Source of the DNA: Mizuhopecten yessoensis
Taxonomy: Eukaryota
Assembly (NCBI RefSeq): GCF_002113885.1
Contig: NW_018407065.1
Span: 2,570,682 to 2,634,681, forward strand
Length of the DNA stretch: 64,000 nucleotides
Reading direction: 5' to 3'
Below the pieces are notes generated by a model, which saw only the letters and a list, made by a program, of their open reading frames with translations, did not search any database and had not been told where the DNA came from. This document shows positions 121-43,600 of the stretch, in pieces. Within the stretch, counting starts at the first letter, position 1, and every line of letters starts with the position of its first letter. Position numbers and translations under genes: made by a program.

Positions 121-2554
121 ACTGGTCTGTGTGGGTAAAATGTACTCCTGTACAGGAATGTACTGATCTACCTCAGAGTTGGTGGCATTACAATCGAGGC
201 TTACCACAACAAAAAACACCAACAGAAATGCGGATATTTATCATGTATCTCGTCTGAAATCTGGCATAACTAAAACAGACCATATACCTACAACGTAACA
301 GTTTAAATGTCTGAACAATTCTTTTTATACCTGAGGAAACCTATTGTTTCAGGCCGCCTGTTTCTTTGATTTAAATATCTATTGAAAAACAATTCACTAA
401 AAAGGTTCTATCTGTTGTTAACTGTGCATAAAAATAGCCATGACGTTCCTCTAAAGGCGGTGAGGTCATGCATAAGGTCAAATGATCCAATTCCAATCAA
501 TAAACTAAACTTGAGGCCATACATGGGGGTTATCTCATGTCAAGTTAATAAAAAAAATTGACATAAAACATTACCTGATTCAGTGAAAATTTCAATTATT
601 GGTCTGAACAAAGTGTGAAAATATATAAAGAATAAACATTCAAGTTTTCTTTCAGATGAATTTCAGAATCTCACAATGATACAGGGGAGACAACCCTTAC
701 TGCCCCATATGGGTGTGCTGCTGTGCATGTGAATGTCAGGTGTCACTCGACCCTGTGTTATAAACATTTCTATGATATCTCCTCCTCAATCTTCATTTTA
801 TACATTTTTCCATATCAGTTAGACAAACTAAGACCACACAATATACCTAACTTACCATTTATTTACATTTCAAAACTAAGATGGTTTCATTTTGGACTCC
901 TTAAAAAATTCATTGATTTTTTGCCAAGACCAAAATGCGCTGTTAGCACTCCTATCAGTGTATAATGTGTTATCTTATCAGAGTGTTACACACCACACCT
1001 ACACACCGACACTCACATGCAATCACACAATGTATTGTCAGCTTGAATCTTATTTATTTACTTTGGAAAGTTCTCAACTTACAGAAATAGAGGATTTCAA
1101 ATAAATTTCCATTGCATAACACAGAAGCATATGATTTTTATGAAACTATCTTCAGCAACCGTTTCATCAAAGTCTAATGGAGCGGGAGCAAGTTTGAGAT
1201 TCTTTTTTATCATTTTTTCCCCTAAAGCATGTTTATTTACACATTTTGTGAATAATTAAGATAAAAACACCACCATTTTTGTCGTTTGACGTTTTATGAC
1301 GTCATATCACATTGTTCCCTTCGACATCAAAATGGATGAAATCACACAGTTTACATATAGATGAGGTATGTTATGTATATTTTGCTAGCATACAGGTTGT
1401 ACTTGACAAACAATATCTGATATACAAAACCTCTATATTGAGACCATTCATAGAAAGTCCAACATGTGGTCTCTTAACACAGGTGGTCCCCAAATACATG
1501 TTCAGTCCATACAGGAATTACTACAATTGAAAACATTAAAAGTGGACTCCTAACACAGTTGGTATCTTAATAAAGGTGGCCACATAAGCAGGTTTGACTG
1601 TAATACCGTATGAAATATCAATTGTTCATTGAAAAAATCATAATTCCCTATAACCAATAGGTTTCTCCCTTCCTGACTCATTAGACAATCCTGCTAGGAG
1701 TGGGTTAAACCGTAGACGTTATTTCATTGGTCAATGTTCTAATTATGATGTCAAGTAACAATGCTTTGCGATGTCATCTTCCCTTGTAATGTCTTAGTTT
1801 CATGGCAATTGTTTTCCAGATTGGAGACAGGAATAAAGTTTTTCCAACAAAAACATTCTAAATATAATATCAGAATGCTGTGGGAAAAAATGAAAATGTC
1901 CCTAAAATCGTGATGGTTGGTTATTATGCTTTTCTAAGTCGACTTAGTTAGTTTTTAAATTGTATGAAGACACAAGGTTTATTATCATGTTTATCTAAGT
2001 CAAGTTAAATAGGGAACCTCTGAACTTCTACAGAAGGTCTACATCACACTGCAAGGTATCACAACAGTAAGGACCTGTGTATAGAGCTGTATATAAGTAC
2101 ATACAAAAGTAACAATATGTACCAAGACCTGCAGGAATTGAGAAAGGCGTCAAAAAGGATCCATTTCAAGATGAAATGTTTTACGTACATGTATGTAAAT
2201 ACTTGACAGTTATTCAGCACTGCAGTCAAGAGTAAAAGTAAACAGAAGGCGAGAGTATTCGGAGACTCTATAGCCCTCCAGGGTCACTATAGACTTCTGT
2301 TGACTCTCGCCCAACAGGACAGGTACTCGACACCACACATAGAACGATCAACAGGTACCTTGGGTCTTTATCAACAGGTATGGAGTGAAAAAGACTCGAA
2401 ATTCCCCAAAACAAAATGCCAATGACAAATAAAAGCCGAAAGTTGAAAATGGAATATTCTTCTGATATCATACCAAATTAATGAAATGTTTTAAGCAAAA
2501 GTAATTTTTTTAAACTTTTTTAAATTTTAATGAATGTGAACTTCAGTGTTATGA

Positions 2555-3900
2555 AATCACCTGTAGCTTTGTGGTGATGATTTTGAAATCTTAAATCACC
2601 TGTAGCTCTGTTGTAATATTGAAATCTTAAACCACCTGTAGCCCTATGGTAATATTCAAACCTTAAACCACCCACCTGTAGCTCTGTGGTAATATTCAAA
2701 CCTTAAACCACCTGTAGCTTTGTGGTAATATTGAAATCTTAAACCACCTGCAGCTCTGTGGTAATATTGAAATCACAAGCCACCTGTAGCTTAAAGGTAA
2801 TACATGCATTGACATATGAAACCGCCTGTAGCTCTGTGGTAATATTGAAACTTAAATCACCTGTAGCTCTAGTCTATGGTCGTATTGAAATCTTAAATCA
2901 CCTTTAGCCTTGTGGTAAAACTGTGGTGGTAAAAATTAAATCTTAAATCACCTGAATTACCTGTAGCTCTGTGGTAATATTGAAATCTTAAACCACCTGT
3001 AGCCCTGTGGTTAATTAATATATGCTCTGCGGTAATATTGAAATCCTAAATCATCTGTAGGCTCTTGAGCTAAAGCTCTGTGGTGGTAAAATGTTAAATC
3101 ACCTGTAACCATGTGGTTTAGCTCTGTGGTGGTAAAATGTTAAATCACCTGTAGCTCTGTGGTTAAGCTCTGTGGTGGTAAAATGTTAAATTACCTGTAG
3201 CCCTGTGGTTAAGCTCTGTGGTAATATTTAAATCTTAAACCACCCGTAGTTCTTGTGGTAAAGCTCTGTGGTGGTAAAATCTTAAATCACCTGTAGCTCT
3301 TGTGGTAAAGCTCTGTGGTGGTAAAATCTTAAATCACCTGTAGCCCTGTGGTGGTAAAATGTTAAATCACCTGTAACCCTGTGGTTAAGCTCTGTGGTGG
3401 TAAAATCTTAAATCACCTGTAGCTCTTATGGTAAAGCTTTGTGGTGGTAAAATGTTAAATCACCTCCTGAAGCTCTGTTGTAATATTGAAATCTTAAACC
3501 ACCTGTAGCTCTGTGGTTAAGCTCTGTGGTAATATTGAAATCTTAAATCATCTGTAGCTCTTGAGCTAAAGCTCTGTGGTGGTAAAATGTTAAATCACCT
3601 GTAGCCCTGTGGTTAAGCTCTGTGGTGGTAAAATGTTCAATCACCTGTAGCCCTGTGGTTAAGCTCTGTGGTGGTAAAATGTTAAATCACCTCCTGTAGC
3701 TCTGTGGTAATATTGAAATCTTAAACCACCTGTAGCTCTGTGGTTAAGCTTTGTGGTAATACTGAAATCTTAAACCACCTGTGGCTCTGCGGTTAAGCTC
3801 TGTGGTAATATTGAAATGTTAAAACACCTGTAGCTCTTGTGGTAAAGCTCTGTGGTGGTAAAATGTTCAATCACTGAGCTTTTTGGTGATGATTTTGAGA
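2555..3900. repeat. Degenerate ~35-bp minisatellite (AAATCACCTGTAGCTCTGTGGTAATATTGAAATCTT) with internal sub-duplications
   Basis: Dozens of variant tandem units with no unique spacers. Confidence 0.9.
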
Positions 3901-6900
3901 TATGAAATCACACGTATCCCTATGGAGATGACATCATTTACTAAACTCTGAAATCCCCTGTTGCTCTAAGGTAATGATATTGATTTCTGAAATTACCTGT
4001 CACTTTGTGAAATTTATGTGTTTTAATTTCAAACAACTTTTAGCTCAGTAATATTATGTGCATGTATAGTAAAACTCTACAAAGAACCCTTACAACTTGA
4101 TATTCTGCGTTATCTACAGGACAGATCTGCCCGATACAGGTTAGCAACAGTTCATCGTATTACTACCTGGGACGACGTCTGATACAGGTGTCTTACCGCC
4201 AGGATTCTCTGTCTGTTGTCTATTGGAACAGATAAGACATGCTTATACTCTCAAACAAAACATGTCTGGTGCACATATGTCAGTAATCAATATCTGAAAA
4301 GTGCTTGTGTTACATATATTAGCACCAAACAATAAAAACCTTTCTAGAGCTCTGAAGCAACAATATGAGTTTAAGTCTGTATTTATATACAAATGTACCA
4401 GCTACAAGTGTAATTTTATAACCTGGCTCTGTGAAACCAAGTTTCATTTGCTTATTAAAGGAATGAATAATGAAACTTTTAAGCTAATTATACCATAATC
4501 TGTATTTCAGACCAATCATTTTAAGTTTTTGAATACTATTGATATGAAAATATCGATGATTTGAAACGTTTAAATATAAATAAATTGATATAATTAAGTG
4601 TTGAAACACAATTATGTCACGAACTGGAACTTAGCTGGTCTTTTCCAATTATCTACCGGGATTGGGATTTAAATGGGGAAAAAGCAGAAAATAGATGTAT
4701 TTTCAAAGGAAAATACCAAGGCTTGGAGGGGCCCAGAAATTTAAACCCATTAGATATGCCTGGCTATTTTATGTCATGATACATGTATCAGTATATAATG
4801 GAAAGAAAAAAACGGTATATCCTGCAATCCAGTAAGTATAGACTTGATTATGTCAACTGTATCGACAAATAGGTCCTAACATATCCGTGGGAATTTTCTT
4901 TTATTTCAAGGTGAAATCTAACCCAGTTTGAGATCAGATTTTATATGAGAATCTACACCCTGTATATACCTGCCTGCGTTAGTTCCATTGACTAATGGTA
5001 GTTATCTTTACACAAGCACAACCCTATCGATTAAAGCTCCAACTCCCTACCAATCATTATAGTAAAGCATTTAATTCAATCTGTTTTTCAACAAATTCTA
5101 TATCAGGGCATATCATTGTACGTACCTGTAAATCAGGACTACAACCAGATAATTATCTCTACAGGGAAACCTATGAAAATTACAGGTGTGTGTGTGTGTA
5201 TGTTAACGAGGACTAACTACAGGTGCAGGCCTATACCAAACGCCACAGTGTGGGATGCCGGGGGTTTATTGGATTAATAATTAGGCAGCCTCAAACGAAC
5301 CAATGGTGACTCTACCATTAACCACTTAGCCTCCAAGAGTACGATTACAGTGCGACGATATCAGGTCAAACCCATTTCACTTGATGTCCTCCTTGGGGAA
5401 TAGACAACTAGTAAAATACTTAAAATCATTATTTTCTGAGGCCAAACAAAATCATTGTTTGTGTTCCTTCTTTCTATTCTCTAAAATTGAGTAAGGTCGG
5501 TAGACTCTTTTCTGACCATGTTGTATAATAGTGCACATTATTTGGCAGCAAATACCTGTATTTACCAAAAGTCCACAACTTCTAACTTCCCAACTTTTAG
5601 AAATTTTCAAAATCTAAGCCAGGTATTTTCAAATTTGGAAAAACCTGGTGGTTTCGCCCCAATTTGAAAATCCTTGGGGCAGGATTCCTCTATTCTCCAC
5701 CAGCTCCTGGACACCAAGAAATGTTTTGCTCTTATTCTGATCACAAGAACTATATTGTAGCTCAGAAATTATTGCAACTTTTTGAAAGCATCAACTTTTT
5801 TCATGAGCTATTTTTGAAGATTTTACAGCTGTACATACATGTACAGACCAGGATTTAAGACAGGAATTGTATGTGCCCCACATACACACTATTAAAAAAA
5901 GTTTTCTGATAATTAAAAACATATATGCTTCCCTTCAAACATAATTTTTTTTCTTGATGTAACCCTACACAGATATATAACTCTGTTTGGCCTCACAAGA
6001 ACCCTCCCACAAACAGAATCTATGGTGTCAAAGTGTCCCTGTGTCTCTACAAGGTTTATTTATGGTGCCACCCCTGCATAAAGCTCCATAAATACTTATT
6101 ATGTATATATTTATAAGTATCATTATGGAGAAACCTAACCAGAGGTCCAAAGACCTCCAGTGTTTCAAGTTATTCGTGAAGGTTTCGTTTACTTTTAATA
6201 AAACAGATCGGTAATCGTTAGTCTCTATGCATTGACTCACACAATGAAAAGTAAAACGTAATTTTACTTTGCGTAAAGGGGTCCGGTACAAAACAACCAT
6301 TATGCACGTTTTATTCACCGATATCTGTTTGTAACTAGGTCTGGTGATACAGTCTCCCTGTTTTTTGATAAGTTTATAAGTTGCTAAATATTTACCTAGG
6401 CTTGTCACCAGCATGTTTATTTACCCTTATATATATAACTGGTCAAGGTTCCTTACAATCAGGACGGTCAGAGTTGAAACATGGTTGATTAAGTGTAGAA
6501 ATAACGTCACACGTTCAGATTTAAAAGTTTCCAATCTTTTGTGGCAGTTATTGTTTACCTTAGATTCTTTTGTCGGAGCTGTAATGTCTGTTGGTAAAGA
6601 TAATCGAGTTTTATCGGTAGTTTAGAACTCTACTTTGGACCCTATCAAACAAGTTGGTTCACATTGGCAGCAAATACCTGTATTTACCAAAAGTCCACAG
6701 CCTCTACACTTGCCAACCTTTAGAAATTTTAACTTCTAAAAGGGCTGACATCCTGTATCCATACCGTTCTAATGTGTTTATATCAAACAATCATTATTGA
6801 TGAATAACTCCACAAATAGCTTTTGATAGCGTTTCAGTGGCATTTTTGGCATTAAGTGCATTTTGATTATAAAATAAAATAGATTCAAACACAACAGGCG

Positions 6901-37600: not shown

Positions 37601-40600
37601 CTTAAGCCAACAATAATAACAACAACATGAAAAAACATTATTTTCCGTGATATTTCTTGTTTCTGAAAAAAATGTAATGGTTGTGATCGTCTCAGTATTG
37701 CATAAAATGTAGGTATTTTGACCATGGTTGCAGCTATTGAAATGTAAAGACATAATTGAAAGGTTATAACGCAGACATTAGTTGTAAAACTGTAATGTTG
37801 ACATTATATATAATGTAGACATTGTGCATTTTTTTTCTGCAAAAAGGTTGGCCCAGTTTTCCCAGAATGAGGAGGGACATGGTATTCCTGCTGACATCCA
37901 ACTTTTTGATATCTTCTCACAGCAGGTCTCACAAGTCATACAGGTAAATATCGTGTAAAAGGTTGTACATGTAAATATTGTGTCAAAGGTCGTACAGGTA
38001 AATATTGTGTTAAAGGTCGTACAGGTAAATATTGTGTTAAAAGTCACCCAAGTAAATATTGTATCACAGTTAAGAGTAGGAGTCAATCGCAGCAAGCTCA
38101 GTATAAGTTGAATCTTATTTATTGGGTATGTCTACCGGTTTCGCCCGAACAGTGGGCTTCTTCAGGACAATTTAATAACAAATTATGTCCCCTGAAGTAC
38201 TAAAATTCTGGGCACATTTATATTGTGTATAGTGACGTAATACAGGTAACGTCACGTGATATTATCTATTTATAACATTCTAGAAAGTTCCATCGCGATT
38301 ATTATTAGTAAATGAGCATTCTAGTCTATAGTCTCAGTTCCTGAAATACTATTAATGTACATACAATTCACTGACTATTTTTAAATATAAATATATATGT
38401 CTAAGTGTGTATACATATAGTTAGACATAAGTACAAGTATCTTTATCCCTAATTATTATTAACCTAAATTATAATGTTCACGTTCATCCTGACAAACAGT
38501 GGATGTGGATAGTGACTTATATCCCAAAGTCTTGTAGTCTACAATTGCGTGGTCTCCTTCTGATGTGTTAGGTGTAGATGCCGTGTCTTCACTCTCTGAT
38601 AATTCTAGATCAGCCTTGAGCAACTCTAGAGTTTCATCTAGTACCGGCCTGAATTGTTTGCAAGGTGGTCCTATTGTGCTCATCCCGTGTCCTGGTTTGA
38701 TTCTAAATTTCACCTGATCTAACTGTTTCTTAGTCAGCGCCTCAAATGGGCGTTTGTTATCCGGTTTGGTTGCCTGTTCTTTAGTGCGGTCTTCAAACAT
38801 CTCCGGTTCCACGTGGTACCCCGGGTGTTTGTCCTTGAGGTGTTTCTTATAAGTTTCCTCCCTCCCATATGTTCGTTTGCAGAGTTTGCATTTATACCAG
38901 GTTTGTATGAGACCATGTGCTATATCCGCATGTCTCCGTAGATTCCTAAGATTAGTGTAAGTCTTCCCGCATCTGATGCACGGTAGACTCAGTTTTCTGC
39001 CCGTAGTATTAGGTTTGCGGCAGGTTGTCTGTTTCGTGTTGGCCATCAAGCTATAATGTTAAGACCTTCTGGTTGAGTTGTACGTAGCATACAAATCCAA
39101 CTCTCTTCTGTTCTGAGACGACGGTTAGTATCCGTGACGTCTTTAACAATACCCGTAACTATGACGTTATGTATGTTATGATCGGGAGACGTAAAATGTC
39201 CCGAGTTTGAGCAACTCTAGAGTTGCTCAAGGCTGATCTAGAATTATCAGAGAGTGAAGACACGGCATCTACACCTAACACATCAGAAGGAGACCATGCA
39301 ATCGTAGACTACAAGACTTTGGGATATAAGTCAATATCCACATCCACTGTTTGTCAGGATGAACGTGAACATAATAATTTAGGTTAATAATATTTAGGGA
39401 TAAAAGATACTTGTACTTATGTCTAACTATATGTATACACACTTAGACATATATATTTATATTTAAAAATAGTCAGTGAATTGTATGTACATTAATAGTA
39501 TTTCAGGAACTGAGACTATATACTAGAATGCTCATTTACTAATAATAACCGCGATGGAACTTTCTAGAACGTTATAAATAGATAATATCACGTGACGTTA
39601 CCTGTATTACGTCACTATACACAATATAAATGTGCCCAGAATTTTAGTACTTCAGGGGACATATTTTGTTATTAAATCGTCCTGAAGAAGCCCACTGTTT
39701 GGGCGAAACCGGTAGACATAGCCAATAAATAAGATTCAACTTATCCTGAGCTTGTTGCGATTGACTCCTACTCTTATTTTCCCTATTCTTCAATCGCCCT
39801 GCATACTGGTTGGTATCCAGGCAAGGGATAACGGAACCCACCGAACCTGAACTACAATAACGGCATTGGCTCTACTCCTGGATTGATGTTGTATCACAGT
39901 TTATACAGATAAATATGTGTCAAAGGTCGTACAGGTAAATATGTGTCAAAGGTCGTACAGGTAAATGTGTGTCAAAGGTCATACAGGTAAATATCGTGTC
40001 AAAAGCCACTCAAGTAAATATTGTATCACAGGCTATACAGATAAATATGTGTCAAAGGTTGTACAGGTAAATATTGTGTCAAAGGTCACCCAAGTAAATA
40101 TTGTATCACAGGTTATACAGATAAATGTGTGCCAAAGGTCGTACAGGTAAATATCGTGTCAAAAGTCATACAGGTAAATATTGTGTCAAAAGTCACACAA
40201 GTAAATATTGTATCACAGGTTATACAGATAAATATGTGTCAAAGGTTGTACAGGTAAATATCGTGTCAAAAGTCATACAGGTAAATATTGTGTCAAAAGT
40301 CACACACTATTCTATCCCCCCTTTTTTTTTTTAGATAAATATGTGTCAAAAGGTTGTACAGGTAAATATCGTGTCAAAAGTCACACAAGTAAATATGTGT
40401 TAAAGGTCGTACAGGTAAATATGTGTCAAAGGTCGTACAGGTAAATATCGTGTCAAAAGTCACCCAAGTAAATATTGTATCACAGGTTATACAGATAAAT
40501 ATGTGTCAAAGGTTGTACAGGTAAATATCGTGTCAAAAGTCACACAAGTAAATATGTGTTAAAGGTCGTACAGGTAAATATGTGTCAAAGGTCATACAGG

Positions 40601-43600
40601 TAAATATGTGTCAAAGGTATGTTTTGTATACAAGTATGTAGTGTCTCACAAAATGTACTGGTATGTTGTGTCTCACAAAATGTACTGGTATGTTGTGTCT
40701 CACAAAATGTACCGGTATATAGTCTCTACACAACATACAGGTATATAATACTTTATGAAAAACATTACAAAACATTAATAGGAACAGCCAAAACAGTTTG
40801 ATTTGTTGCCGAAGGTGATAACATTGGATAGTCATTTATATATTTATAGTTTCAACATCCTTTATAATGTGATCATTTTACAGAATCGGCCGGACATGCC
40901 ACCCGAGGATATCGTTTCCCTACAGGTAGCGCTGATTAACTTGGCACTCAAATGTTACCCAGATAAGACAGAATATGTGGACAAAGTGCTGGAGACAACA
41001 GAGGAAATATTCAATCGACTCAACCTTGACCAGTACGTATGACATTCATATTCTGTTGTTCGTTGTTGTGAGTAAACGAGGGACTATTCTGTGTTGTGAG
41101 TTAATGGGGGACTATTTTGTGTTGTGAGTTAATGGGGAATTATTTTGTGTTGTGAATTAACGAGGGACTATCCTGTGTTGTGAGTTAATGGGGGACTATT
41201 CTGTGTTGTGAGTTAATTGGGGACTATTCTGTATTGTGAGTTAATGGGGGACTATTCTGTGTTGTGAGTTAATGGACCATTCTGTGTTGTGAGTTAATGG
41301 GGGACTATTCTGTGTTGTGAGTTATCGAGGGACTATTCTGTGTTGTGAGTTGATGGGGGACTATTCTGTGTTGTGAGTTAACGAAGGACTATTCTGTGTT
41401 GTGAGTGAATTAGACTATTCTGTGTTGTGAGTTAATGGGAGACTATTCTGTGTTGTGAGTTAATGGGGGACTATTCTGGCATTGTGAGTGAATGGAATTA
41501 TTCTGTGTTGTGAGTTAATGGGGGACTATTCTATGTTGTGAGTTAATGGACCATTCTGTGTTGTGAGTTAATGGGGGACTATTCTGTGTTGTGAGTGAAT
41601 TGGACTATTCTGTGTTGTGAGTTAATGAGGGACTATTCTGTGTTGTGAGTTAACGAGGGACTGTTCTGTGTTGTGAGTTAATGGGGGACTATTCTGTGTT
41701 GTGAGTTAATGGGGGACTATTCTGGCATTGTGAGTGAATGGAAATATTCTTTGTTGTGAGTTGATAGGGGACTGTTCTGTGTTGTGAGTGAATGGGACTA
41801 TTCTGTGTTGTGAGTTAACGAGGGACTATTCTGTGTTGTGAGTTAATGAGGGACTATTTTGTGTTGTGAGTTAATGGGGTACTATGCTGTGTTGTGAGTT
41901 AACGAGGGACTATTCTGTGTTGTGAGCTAACAAGGGACTATTCTGTGTTGTGAGTGAATGGGGGACTATTCTGTGTTGTGAGTGAATGGGACTGTCTTGT
42001 GGTGTTAGTTCACAGTCCTCCATTTTGCTGATTGCTTTAATTTACCTCCTAATTTTCACCTGTATGAAAATTTACCTTTGCTAACAGAAGCTTAACTTCT
42101 GTTCACCCCAGTCTGGAGCATGGCAGTCCAGTTTCCAAGGAGTTGATGCGGCTGATGAAGATCCCGGTGGACAGCTACAACAACGTGCTCACTGTGCTCC
42201 AGCTTGGACACTTCGGACCGCTGTTTGAATACTTTGACTTCAAGAGCAGAAAAATCATGAGTTGCTACATCATCAATAATGTGCTGGAAAATGACACATT
42301 CATACCAACACAAGAGAATGTGAGTTTGACACACATTGCTTGCACACACACAAACAAACAAAATTGTTCAAAATATTTTTTTATTTCCGCATATAGTGGT
42401 TTATTTTTCTATTTGTATAATTCTCTTCTGGCTATTTCATTTACATCTTACCATGTTATGATATCCCAACCCCATGGTGTAACCGGTTACAGGATTGACT
42501 AGCCCCAGTTTCCCTGTAGCATGGACTGTAATTTAATTGGCTAGTTTTAGCTTCCCTGCAGTATAAACTGTAACTAGATTGGCTAGTTCTAGATTATTTG
42601 CATTGTAAACTGTCACTTGATTGGCAAGCCCTAGCTTTCCTGCAGTATAAACTGCTATAGAGTTGACTAGCTCCTATTAAACTGTTTTTAGACTGGTTAG
42701 TTCTAGCTTCTGCACAATATGAAACCTCACTTAATTTGCTAGTCCCTAGCTTCTCTACAGTAGAAACTGTTTTATTTTTGGCTTTGACTAACATCCCTGA
42801 AATATAAACTGTTCCCTGATTGACTAGCCCCAGTTCTCAGTAGTGTGATTTGTTAGTTGGTTGACTAGCCAATGCCTGTTGTTTTATCCTACCAATAAAA
42901 ATTCTATGACACTCACTTTTCCAGGTTGACAGTATCCTGAACATTGTAAATGTGCTAGTGCAAGACCAGAATGACCAGCCCGAAGAACCAGAAGATCCTG
43001 AGGATTTCGCAGAGGAACAAGGCATTATGGGAAGATTCATATATCTCTTACAAGCGGAGGACCTCAACCAACAATATCTGGTAAGATTTAACACCGCCTG
43101 CACATATGGCAGAAAGCGTAACCAGAACCTCCACAATGTTAATAATGGAACTCACACAGTATTCACTCTATATACACTAAACTCTAAAGTAAATGTGTAA
43201 AATAGCTACCATACAGTAGCATATAATATACTGTAGAACCATGAAATTTCATTCAAAACCAACAAAATTGAAACACACACAAAAAACTTGACACAAAACT
43301 ATGTTTTTCAATTGATAATATGTATGTACTATGAGAATCCTGTCACAACTACCCCTCCCCCCTTTTTTTTTTTTTACTTTATGCTAAGAAGTTTTACCCC
43401 AACAAATTCAATGGTTTTACTATAGACCATAAAATAAACATGTAGAATAGACACTATGTTTGGTATCCTCTGAATAATAATAATATTTCCCTTAGATCCT
43501 GAACACGGCCAGAAAACACTTTGGCAGTGGCGGTGACCAGAGGATCAAGTTCACCCTTCCACCCATTGTGTTTGCTGCTTACAGACTGTCTATGAGATAT

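Follow-up and report, generated by a model that had tools for sequence, protein, structure and literature searches.

In a window of 64,000 nucleotides (nt) of the bivalve Mizuhopecten yessoensis (assembly GCF_002113885.1, contig NW_018407065.1, positions 2,570,682 to 2,634,681; the window is the whole stretch of DNA analysed, and unprefixed coordinates below refer to it), we examined a 1,817-bp insertion at 38072-39888. This insertion is very probably a pair of 5′-truncated copies derived from an autonomous Penelope-like element (PLE). The element would encode an upstream open reading frame (ORF0), a reverse transcriptase (RT) joined to a GIY-YIG endonuclease and, downstream of them, a zinc-finger (ZF) ORF that is under selection, is probably translated by stop-start coupling and encodes a putative cofactor of the element's ribonucleoprotein (RNP), all followed by a 3′ untranslated region (3′-UTR) with a hammerhead ribozyme. 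The first-pass annotation of the window had favoured an RT-less, non-autonomous family of PLEs or retrozymes and had named as its alternative a larger PLE with an accessory ZF ORF, truncated to its 3′ end. The alternative was borne out, since copies elsewhere in the genome reach the endonuclease (five contigs) and the RT (contig C5410), and the favoured option was not, the copies continuing into endonuclease and RT from scattered 5′ ends. The part worth following is the conserved ZF ORF of the lineage; the window insertion itself is an ordinary dead copy.

Copies elsewhere in the genome lead into an autonomous Penelope-like element

The search of the host genome covered 988 Mb in 82,659 contigs and, with the window unit as query, returned 106 matching places. 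The majority were solo units without an inverted partner. Their 5′ ends were scattered (unit positions ~10, 245, 414, 427, 450 and 609), which is the pattern left by 5′ truncation, and many copies retained only the last ~100-210 bp of the unit. Several copies shared sequence upstream of the breakpoint of the window copy. Extension of six of them showed that 5′ homology ran ~645 bp further in C5561, C5410 and C3892, and that the copies in C5561, C5579, C1152, C76692 and C3892 continued unbroken into a GIY-YIG endonuclease ORF. This stretch carries the hallmarks PCDKNCRIC and then VYLISCNRCGMQYVGQ (in C5561) and ends in EESWI...PEGLN; the C5561 piece scored 21.4 bits against Pfam GIY-YIG, just below the cut-off of 22.6. 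The copy in C5410 extended into a PLE RT stretch of 311 amino acids (aa) with the motifs PKIHK..GRPIVS and YIDDIF, and the BLAST map of this contig showed no upstream direct partial copy.

The less truncated member of the window pair, copy A (38072-39203, minus strand), consists of an endonuclease remnant, the ZF ORF and the hammerhead 3′-UTR. Over its whole length it is ~91% identical to the copies in C5561, C5579, C5410 and C1152, which run further 5′ into endonuclease and RT. The remnant comprises the C-terminal 51 codons of the GIY-YIG ORF and its TGA stop (39046-39203, minus strand; codons 39203→39049, stop 39048-39046) and matches the ORF ends in C5561 and C5410; in the genome search it was 96% identical to positions 130-181 of the 181-aa C5561 endonuclease query. 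The first-pass annotation had reported no RT, GIY-YIG or transposase in the insertion. That holds for the transposase and for the RT, lost here by truncation, and fails for the last 51 GIY-YIG codons.

A complete relative was found in C5482 (locus L039). It comprises a 201-aa ORF0, a 747-aa RT/GIY-YIG ORF, a 199-aa ZF ORF and a hammerhead 3′-UTR, and both domains of the 747-aa ORF pass the Pfam cut-offs (RVT_1, 36.8 bits; GIY-YIG, 26.2 bits, residues 654-737, VVYLISCKKCQLQYVGQT). Its RT is 68% identical to that of the window family over the 311-aa stretch of C5410, and its ZF protein is 44% identical to the window ORF. The locus holds two ZF ORFs, 100% identical and 3,777 bp apart, which is the tandem arrangement of pseudo-long terminal repeats (pseudo-LTRs), and a hammerhead lies ~120 nt upstream of ORF0. 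In this relative ORF0 (L039 473-1078) overlaps the RT/endonuclease ORF (1003-3246) by 76 nt in another frame, and in Argopecten irradians ORF0 (L050 2751-3494) and the RT/endonuclease ORF (3495-5744) are parted by one in-frame stop. These arrangements suggest readthrough or frameshifting; the PLE literature mentions an ORF1 that a frameshift separates (PMC8557442).

Cross-matching the endonuclease and ZF search tables gave at least 23 genome loci in which the endonuclease lies directly upstream of the ZF ORF on the same strand. In the genome-wide endonuclease table, every match above ~49% identity adjoins a ZF ORF, and among the many matches at 35-43%, members of other PLE families, C76692:181803 is the only one to do so. 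No ZF ORF was found at L046, a distant PLE with an intact 760-aa frame. The divergent copies in C5439, C5318, C5473 and C5460 are known from the search tables only. At L048 (contig C1021, ~1438-2450; 67% RT identity) the hammerhead follows the RT by only ~330 bp, and this copy appears to have lost endonuclease and ZF ORF through an internal deletion; the ORFs flanking it have a YVDD motif and may come from another retroelement. An apparent open frame of 675 aa in C5040 was rejected, as it consists of N runs.

The affiliation with PLEs proposed by the first-pass annotation was thus upheld, both by the RT and endonuclease of other copies and by the four hammerhead traits described below. The family shows a PLE-type RT (C5410, C5482), a C-terminal GIY-YIG domain with two cysteines between GIY and YIG (CCHH motif), pseudo-LTR tandems (C5482, Argopecten), inverted truncated pairs (the window and several other loci), a one-ended tail and a hammerhead. 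It departs from the known plan of a single RT/endonuclease ORF in that a conserved ZF ORF follows the endonuclease. The Neptune linker CX2-5CxxC is present as PCDKNCRIC in C5561 and as PCGKNCKIC in C5482, and a related motif occurs in Nematis too. By this motif the element would be closest to the Neptune type, reportedly treated by Arkhipova in 2006 among the canonical C-terminal-endonuclease PLEs.

The zinc-finger ORF is a gene of the element under selection

The only long ORF of the insertion (38459-39046, minus strand; ORF 39046→38462 followed by its stop) is intact and encodes 195 aa with two C2H2 fingers, as the first-pass annotation had it; both fingers score above the Pfam cut-offs (zf-C2H2_4, 29.9 bits; zf-C2H2, 29.4 bits). 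Its ATG overlaps the endonuclease stop (TGATG). Three 5′-truncated copies of the family, those in the window, C5561 and C5579, retain it intact. Comparison of the window ORF with the copies in C5561 and C5579 gave 33-35 synonymous and 27-28 non-synonymous differences and a ratio of non-synonymous to synonymous rates (dN/dS) of 0.18-0.20 (binomial P = 4e-8). Between the young copies in C5561 and C5579 the ratio was ~1.1, as expected because inserted copies decay neutrally. In comparisons between families and between species the synonymous sites have reached saturation, while the ZF ORFs are still open. These results show that the ZF ORF is a gene of the element under selection. Three checks put forward by the first-pass annotation came out in favour of its alternative reading: the ORF is multi-copy in the genome, it is linked to an endonuclease upstream and to a hammerhead downstream wherever the 3′-UTR is readable, and its dN/dS among copies is not neutral.

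The ORF measures ~195-220 aa across the lineage, and intact homologues persist in other bivalves at 29-49% identity. Conserved in their alignment are both N-terminal fingers, a block of W-K-x-P-F-E plus K-F-R, the acidic stretch D-L-x-L-S-(D/E/S) and, at the C-terminus, the motif T-x-C-x-D-E. Searching proteins by word index, with the ZF ORF as query, gave no matches. An exhaustive profile search recovered true full-length relatives (P0124, P0128, P0132, P0148, P0216 and P0261) but cannot delimit their taxonomic range, because host poly-zinc-finger proteins dominate its list; P0233, another profile match, was discarded as a generic zinc-finger protein. Weak Pfam matches to fingers of the double-stranded RNA type (zf-met, zf-C2H2_jaz), below or near the cut-offs, do not settle whether the protein binds RNA or DNA. 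Most likely, and as our best guess, it is a putative nucleic-acid-binding cofactor of the element's RNP.

By RT/endonuclease, relatives of the element are found in Ylistrum balloti (67% identity), Saccostrea cucullata (53%), A. irradians (50%) and Ruditapes philippinarum (47%), the closest RT relatives being those of scallops. All four have the order endonuclease, ZF ORF, minimal hammerhead, in Argopecten in a tandem arrangement with a unit of 3,882 bp. In the samples ERZ25069866 and SRR26445940 the endonuclease is likewise followed by the ZF ORF, and a hammerhead was found in neither. The relatives at 40-42% identity in Branchiostoma and in the tick Ornithodoros have no ZF ORF, and database relatives carry RVT_1, DUF8422 and HTH_animal. 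The lineage carries its ZF gene in scallops, oysters and clams. The gene is apparently undescribed, in the sense that a full-text literature search, with Repbase and Dfam outside its scope, found no paper on a C2H2 or downstream ZF ORF in an endonuclease-bearing PLE.

These comparisons bear on the possibility that the ZF ORF is a host gene, or a fragment of one, recently captured by a single PLE lineage, or a chance neighbour without a role in the element. The Y. balloti labels 'EVI1-A-like' and 'PRDM16-like', given by automatic annotation, would fit it, as would the fact that C2H2 fingers are the commonest animal protein domain, with a profile search swamped by host poly-zinc-finger proteins. 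Such a gene would nevertheless not be expected at the same position, between endonuclease stop and hammerhead 3′-UTR, in five bivalve genera, nor in the same order behind the endonuclease in ERZ25069866, SRR26445940 and at least 23 loci of the host genome. Motifs outside the fingers are conserved as well, and a dN/dS of 0.2 between subfamilies with ~1 between recent copies marks selection on an active element lineage. We regard this explanation as very improbable, although an ancient capture may be the origin of the ORF.

NCBI automatic annotation of Y. balloti mislabels these ORFs (L049 8235-8786; proteins P0124, P0128 and P0271) as 'MDS1 and EVI1 complex locus protein EVI1-A-like', 'histone-lysine N-methyltransferase PRDM16-like' and 'uncharacterized protein'. 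The entries are transposon ORFs annotated as host genes, so that public annotation already labels such ORFs in this way.

The zinc-finger start codon adjoins the endonuclease stop

In seven lineages the distance from the endonuclease stop to the ZF AUG is between -8 and +2 nt. The two codons overlap as UGAUG in the window family and in C5228. Two nucleotides separate stop and AUG in C5482 (UAG), Argopecten (UAA) and Ruditapes (UAA), and one nucleotide does so in ERZ25069866 (UAA). In L043, at 53% RT identity, the AUG precedes the end of the stop by 8 nt (AUGGCUAA). Since AUG and endonuclease stop overlap or are only a few bases apart in all seven, we propose that translation of the ZF ORF most likely uses the full-length RNA and occurs by stop-start coupling, that is, termination followed by reinitiation. 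Coupling of the UAAUG type is known from the silkworm non-LTR element SART1, influenza B M1/BM2 and calicivirus VP2.

The 3′-UTR carries a minimal hammerhead of the Penelope-like type

The hammerhead of copy A (38130-38168, minus strand) reads GUC-CUGAAGA-A-GCCC..GGGC-GAA-ACCGGU-A/GAC, with predicted cleavage between 38133 and 38132 (slash), and that of copy B, the second copy of the pair (39679-39717, plus strand), reads GUC-CUGAAGA-A-GCCCA..UGGGC-GAA-ACCGGU-A/GAC, with predicted cleavage after 39714. An AATAAA follows in each, at 38118-38123 (minus strand; 9 nt downstream of the predicted cleavage site) and at 39724-39729 (plus strand). The inverted arms of the insertion had been described as ending in these motifs. 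Both motifs are indeed in each arm, but the arms run on past the hammerhead, the left by 58 nt and the right by 59 nt of arm plus an extension of 112 nt (39777-39888).

An Rfam scan of the window matched no hammerhead family, even at E<=10, and the motif was identified by hand and by covariation in relatives. Minimal hammerheads of PLEs are defined by four traits, which include a conserved core, a G10.1-C11.1 pair and a palindromic helix III that pairs only between two molecules (Cervera & de la Pena 2014, PMC4209133). All four hold in every lineage examined. Helix III occurs among relatives as ACCGGU, ACUAGU, ACAUGU and ACGU, always palindromic, helix I as GUC/GAC, GUU/AAC and ACC/GGU, and helix II in five different paired sequences. 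This covariation in helices I, II and III, together with the four traits, identifies the window motif as a PLE-type minimal hammerhead, for which self-cleavage is predicted. At no more than one mismatch the family hammerhead occurs 48 times genome-wide, against 0 occurrences of a reversed control pattern.

Folded alone, the hammerhead RNA prefers a hairpin that buries the core, as would suit a ribozyme that depends on dimerization or is assisted by protein (PMC4209133; PMC11167929). About 30 nt upstream of the core lies an ACUU(C/U)AG box complementary to the core CUGA(A/U)G, both in the window (39649-39656, plus strand; 38191-38198, minus strand) and at L049, L039, L048, L050 and L051. In the window family box and core pair as a hairpin of 8 bp (CUUCAGGG with UCCUGAAG), so that the minimum-energy fold conceals the core, and the box may be a ribozyme off-switch or a protein-binding site. 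The 3′-UTR also contains, by eye, a cluster of motifs resembling a cAMP response element and an E-box (38236-38262 and 39587-39613; GTGACGTAAT...AACGTCACGTGAT), which may be a promoter element; PLE promoters sit in the pseudo-LTR.

The insertion is a head-to-head pair of truncated copies

The boundaries given by the first-pass annotation, an insertion of 1.8 kb with a 13-bp target-site duplication (TSD) and two inverted arms of ~560 bp, proved accurate. The 13-mer TTGTATCACAGTT stands on the left at 38059-38071 and again on the right at 39889-39901. Deletion of the insertion together with one copy of the 13-mer regenerates a 27-bp minisatellite unit present elsewhere in the surrounding array, which indicates a real TSD and not mere satellite periodicity. 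The host array (37929-40618), split by the insertion, appears in Tandem Repeats Finder as the rows 37929-38062 and 39889-40618. Two more minisatellites adjoin it, at 41064-41990 and 40634-40733, one with a 28-bp unit in 33.6 copies and one with another 27-bp unit in 3.7 copies. The copy in C5561 (L002 183-848, 2733-3458) also sits in a satellite, of ~146-bp period, with a duplication of ~11 bp (TTCAAAATCTT). These are the only two copies located in tandem arrays; ten others lie outside arrays, and we make no claim of a target preference.

In the repeat search the inverted arms span 38071-38633 and 39213-39776 (563 bp). They align over 561 bases with 97.5% identity, 14 mismatches and 3 gap columns, and if the arms were identical at insertion, which is an assumption, the ~2.5% divergence has accumulated since then. 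Copy B (39213-39888, plus strand), which in reverse complement matches copy A at 97.5% identity over the 561 bases, is more severely 5′-truncated. It begins inside the ZF ORF, at the palindrome AACTCTAGAGTT internal to that ORF, and comprises the 3′-UTR, the hammerhead and a tail. The last 54 ZF codons are still open in it, and the ORF at 39223-39387 repeats the ZF C-terminus. The junction of the two copies (39204-39212) consists of 3 filler bases and 6 bases that extend a perfect palindrome of 24 nt (39207-39230). The right arm is thus a second, more truncated copy of the unit in copy A and not a terminal repeat, and the insertion is a head-to-head pair of 5′-truncated PLE copies.

Two alternative 3′ ends occur among the copies, at unit positions 1141-1144 and ~1252. 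Copy A stops at the proximal one, without a tail, and copy B alone carries the distal extension, a tail of 112 nt (39777-39888, plus strand). The tail is contiguous with the unit in C5561, C1152, C76692 and C3892, and it is absent in C5579 and C5410 as in copy A. One arm with a tail and the other ending proximally without it was the arrangement in the window and in C4406, C5512, C3738:2268597-2269004, C76725, C5468, C4656 and C1613. Some head-to-head inverted pairs are only ~100 + 200 bp long.

PLEs typically show inverted 5′-truncated copies and a tail at one end only (PMC8557442). A purified PLE protein cleaves and extends both strands of its target DNA, and RT starts at two internal sites, the segment between them being the genomic 'tail' (Frangieh et al. 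2024, PMC11167929). Following this published biochemistry, the window insertion would have arisen in a single retrotransposition event of an autonomous C-terminal-endonuclease PLE. The element protein would have cut the two target strands 13 bp apart, and each 3′-OH would have primed reverse transcription. One cDNA, begun at the distal initiation site, would carry the 112-nt tail, and the other, begun at the proximal site, would lack it. Both would have ended early, one in the endonuclease ORF (copy A) and one in the ZF ORF (copy B), and would then have been joined at the short palindrome with both 3′ ends outward. The rule of a tail on one arm of inverted pairs, read from the genome of a distant host, supports the two RT start sites that the anole element showed in vitro.

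The same structure can be read as an RT-less, non-autonomous family of PLEs or retrozymes that carries nothing but the ZF protein and depends on other PLEs for its mobilization in trans. In the window copy the RT is missing and the endonuclease is reduced to a stump, while hammerheads and an intact ZF ORF persist; the ORF is intact in three 5′-truncated copies of the family (window, C5561, C5579), and PLE pseudo-LTRs have been proposed as the source of animal retrozymes (bioRxiv 10.64898/2026.07.22.740005). A non-autonomous derivative should share a defined 5′ end without RT. Here the 5′ ends vary by copy, that of the window copy lies inside the endonuclease ORF, and homology in other copies continues 5′ unbroken into endonuclease and RT. 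Retrozymes are short, non-coding, tandem hammerhead units, whereas this unit is coding, is contiguous with endonuclease and RT elsewhere, and abuts the endonuclease ORF with its ZF ORF in every lineage read; a repeat search of the window found no tandem hammerhead array of retrozyme size. We consider an RT-less family slightly less probable still than a captured host gene. That the 563-bp arms are terminal inverted repeats of a DNA transposon or foldback element, with the ZF protein as its DNA-binding factor, is hardly credible, for although long inverted arms are bounded by a TSD, other copies are mostly solo units without an inverted partner, which already contradicts it, the arms, unequal and with a one-sided tail, represent the coding 3′ portion of a retroelement, the TSD varies in length (13 bp in the window, ~11 bp in C5561), and the window insertion contains no transposase.

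Points that weigh against an autonomous element with a third gene

Several observations speak against deriving the insertion from an autonomous PLE with a stop-start-coupled ZF gene. No full-length copy of the window subfamily was found among those extended; the longest, in C5410, begins only near residue 167 of the RT ORF, so that the complete architecture is taken from the relative in C5482. The placement near Neptune comes from a motif and not from a tree. The tail, at 112 nt, is longer than the 30-40 bp published for known PLEs. Stop-start coupling is proposed from the spacing of the codons, the Saccostrea copy has a gap of ~30 nt between endonuclease and ZF ORF, and no conserved ribosome-tethering motif resembling the termination upstream ribosome-binding site (TURBS) of calicivirus-type reinitiation was recognised by eye. 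For the putative cofactor, the AlphaFold2 model built from a six-sequence alignment is confident only over residues ~20-80, which are the two fingers, and of low confidence outside them (mean pLDDT 60.9). A predicted complex of RT/endonuclease and ZF protein scored 0.00, which in itself argues neither for nor against binding.

Significance and comparison with known systems

PLEs are the least understood class of eukaryotic retroelements, and in one animal class their machinery would gain a component through a downstream ORF that is conserved and under selection. We tentatively suggest, at rather less than even odds, that the bivalve PLE has a third gene, a two-finger C2H2 protein made by termination-reinitiation at the endonuclease stop and needed for propagation of the element. 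Possible roles are binding of the 3′-UTR or hammerhead RNA (the 'protein-assisted ribozyme' of PLEs), binding of target DNA, and contact with host factors through the acidic D-L-x-L-S stretch. If this is true, no accessory protein of a canonical PLE would precede it, and stop-start coupling behind a long ORF would gain a new example from animals. The ZF ORF thus offers an experimental handle on what PLEs need beyond RT and endonuclease, and a candidate for termination-reinitiation in an animal retroelement.

As in the bivalve element, the downstream AUG overlaps or adjoins the upstream stop in SART1, influenza B M1/BM2 and calicivirus VP2. The bivalve element differs from them in being known here from its sequence, in the length of its upstream ORF and in that no tethering motif was recognised.

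With the minimal hammerheads of PLEs (PMC4209133) the window motif shares the core, the G10.1-C11.1 pair, the two-molecule palindromic helix III and a short helix I. Nothing of substance differs; in the window family the variable position 7 is often A (CUGAAGA), and the conserved ACUUCAG box ~30 nt upstream is able to pair with the core. The retrozymes of metazoans, which are non-LTR elements, have similar type-I or minimal hammerheads related to PLE repeats and presumably depend on the PLE machinery, but they are short non-coding tandem repeats that give circular RNAs, whereas the bivalve element is coding, non-tandem and contiguous with RT and endonuclease elsewhere.

Retroelements of bdelloid rotifers, including the endonuclease-less PLEs Athena/Terminons, give a precedent for extra ORFs (Rodriguez et al. 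2017, PMC5408684). They belong to another phylum, are of another element type and, as described there, encode other proteins, with no C2H2 protein coupled to an endonuclease stop among them. PAc, the Poseidon element of Anolis carolinensis and the PLE that has been characterised by biochemistry (PMC11167929), is the source of the mechanism outlined above, with cleavage and extension of both strands, two RT start sites and a protein-assisted hammerhead. It belongs to another clade (Penelope/Poseidon, without a linker finger), has a single ORF and carries a hammerhead that overlaps the start of that ORF, and its biochemistry stands against an element so far read from genomes.

The closest likeness is to canonical PLEs with a C-terminal endonuclease (PMC8557442). 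Common to both are the RT followed by GIY-YIG, the CX2-5CxxC linker (C-x3-C-x2-C here) and the two cysteines in GIY-YIG, as well as pseudo-LTR tandems, inverted truncated partners, a one-ended tail, a TSD of variable length, a hammerhead in the repeat and an optional upstream ORF. Their tail is of 30-40 bp, against 112 nt in the window family. A single RT/endonuclease ORF is what has been described for the canonical endonuclease-bearing elements (PMC8557442, PMC11167929, and PMC6515669 on MGERT), at most preceded by an optional ORF1 (Craig et al. 2021, PMC8557442), and to this plan the bivalve element adds a third ORF, encoding two C2H2 fingers, downstream of the endonuclease.

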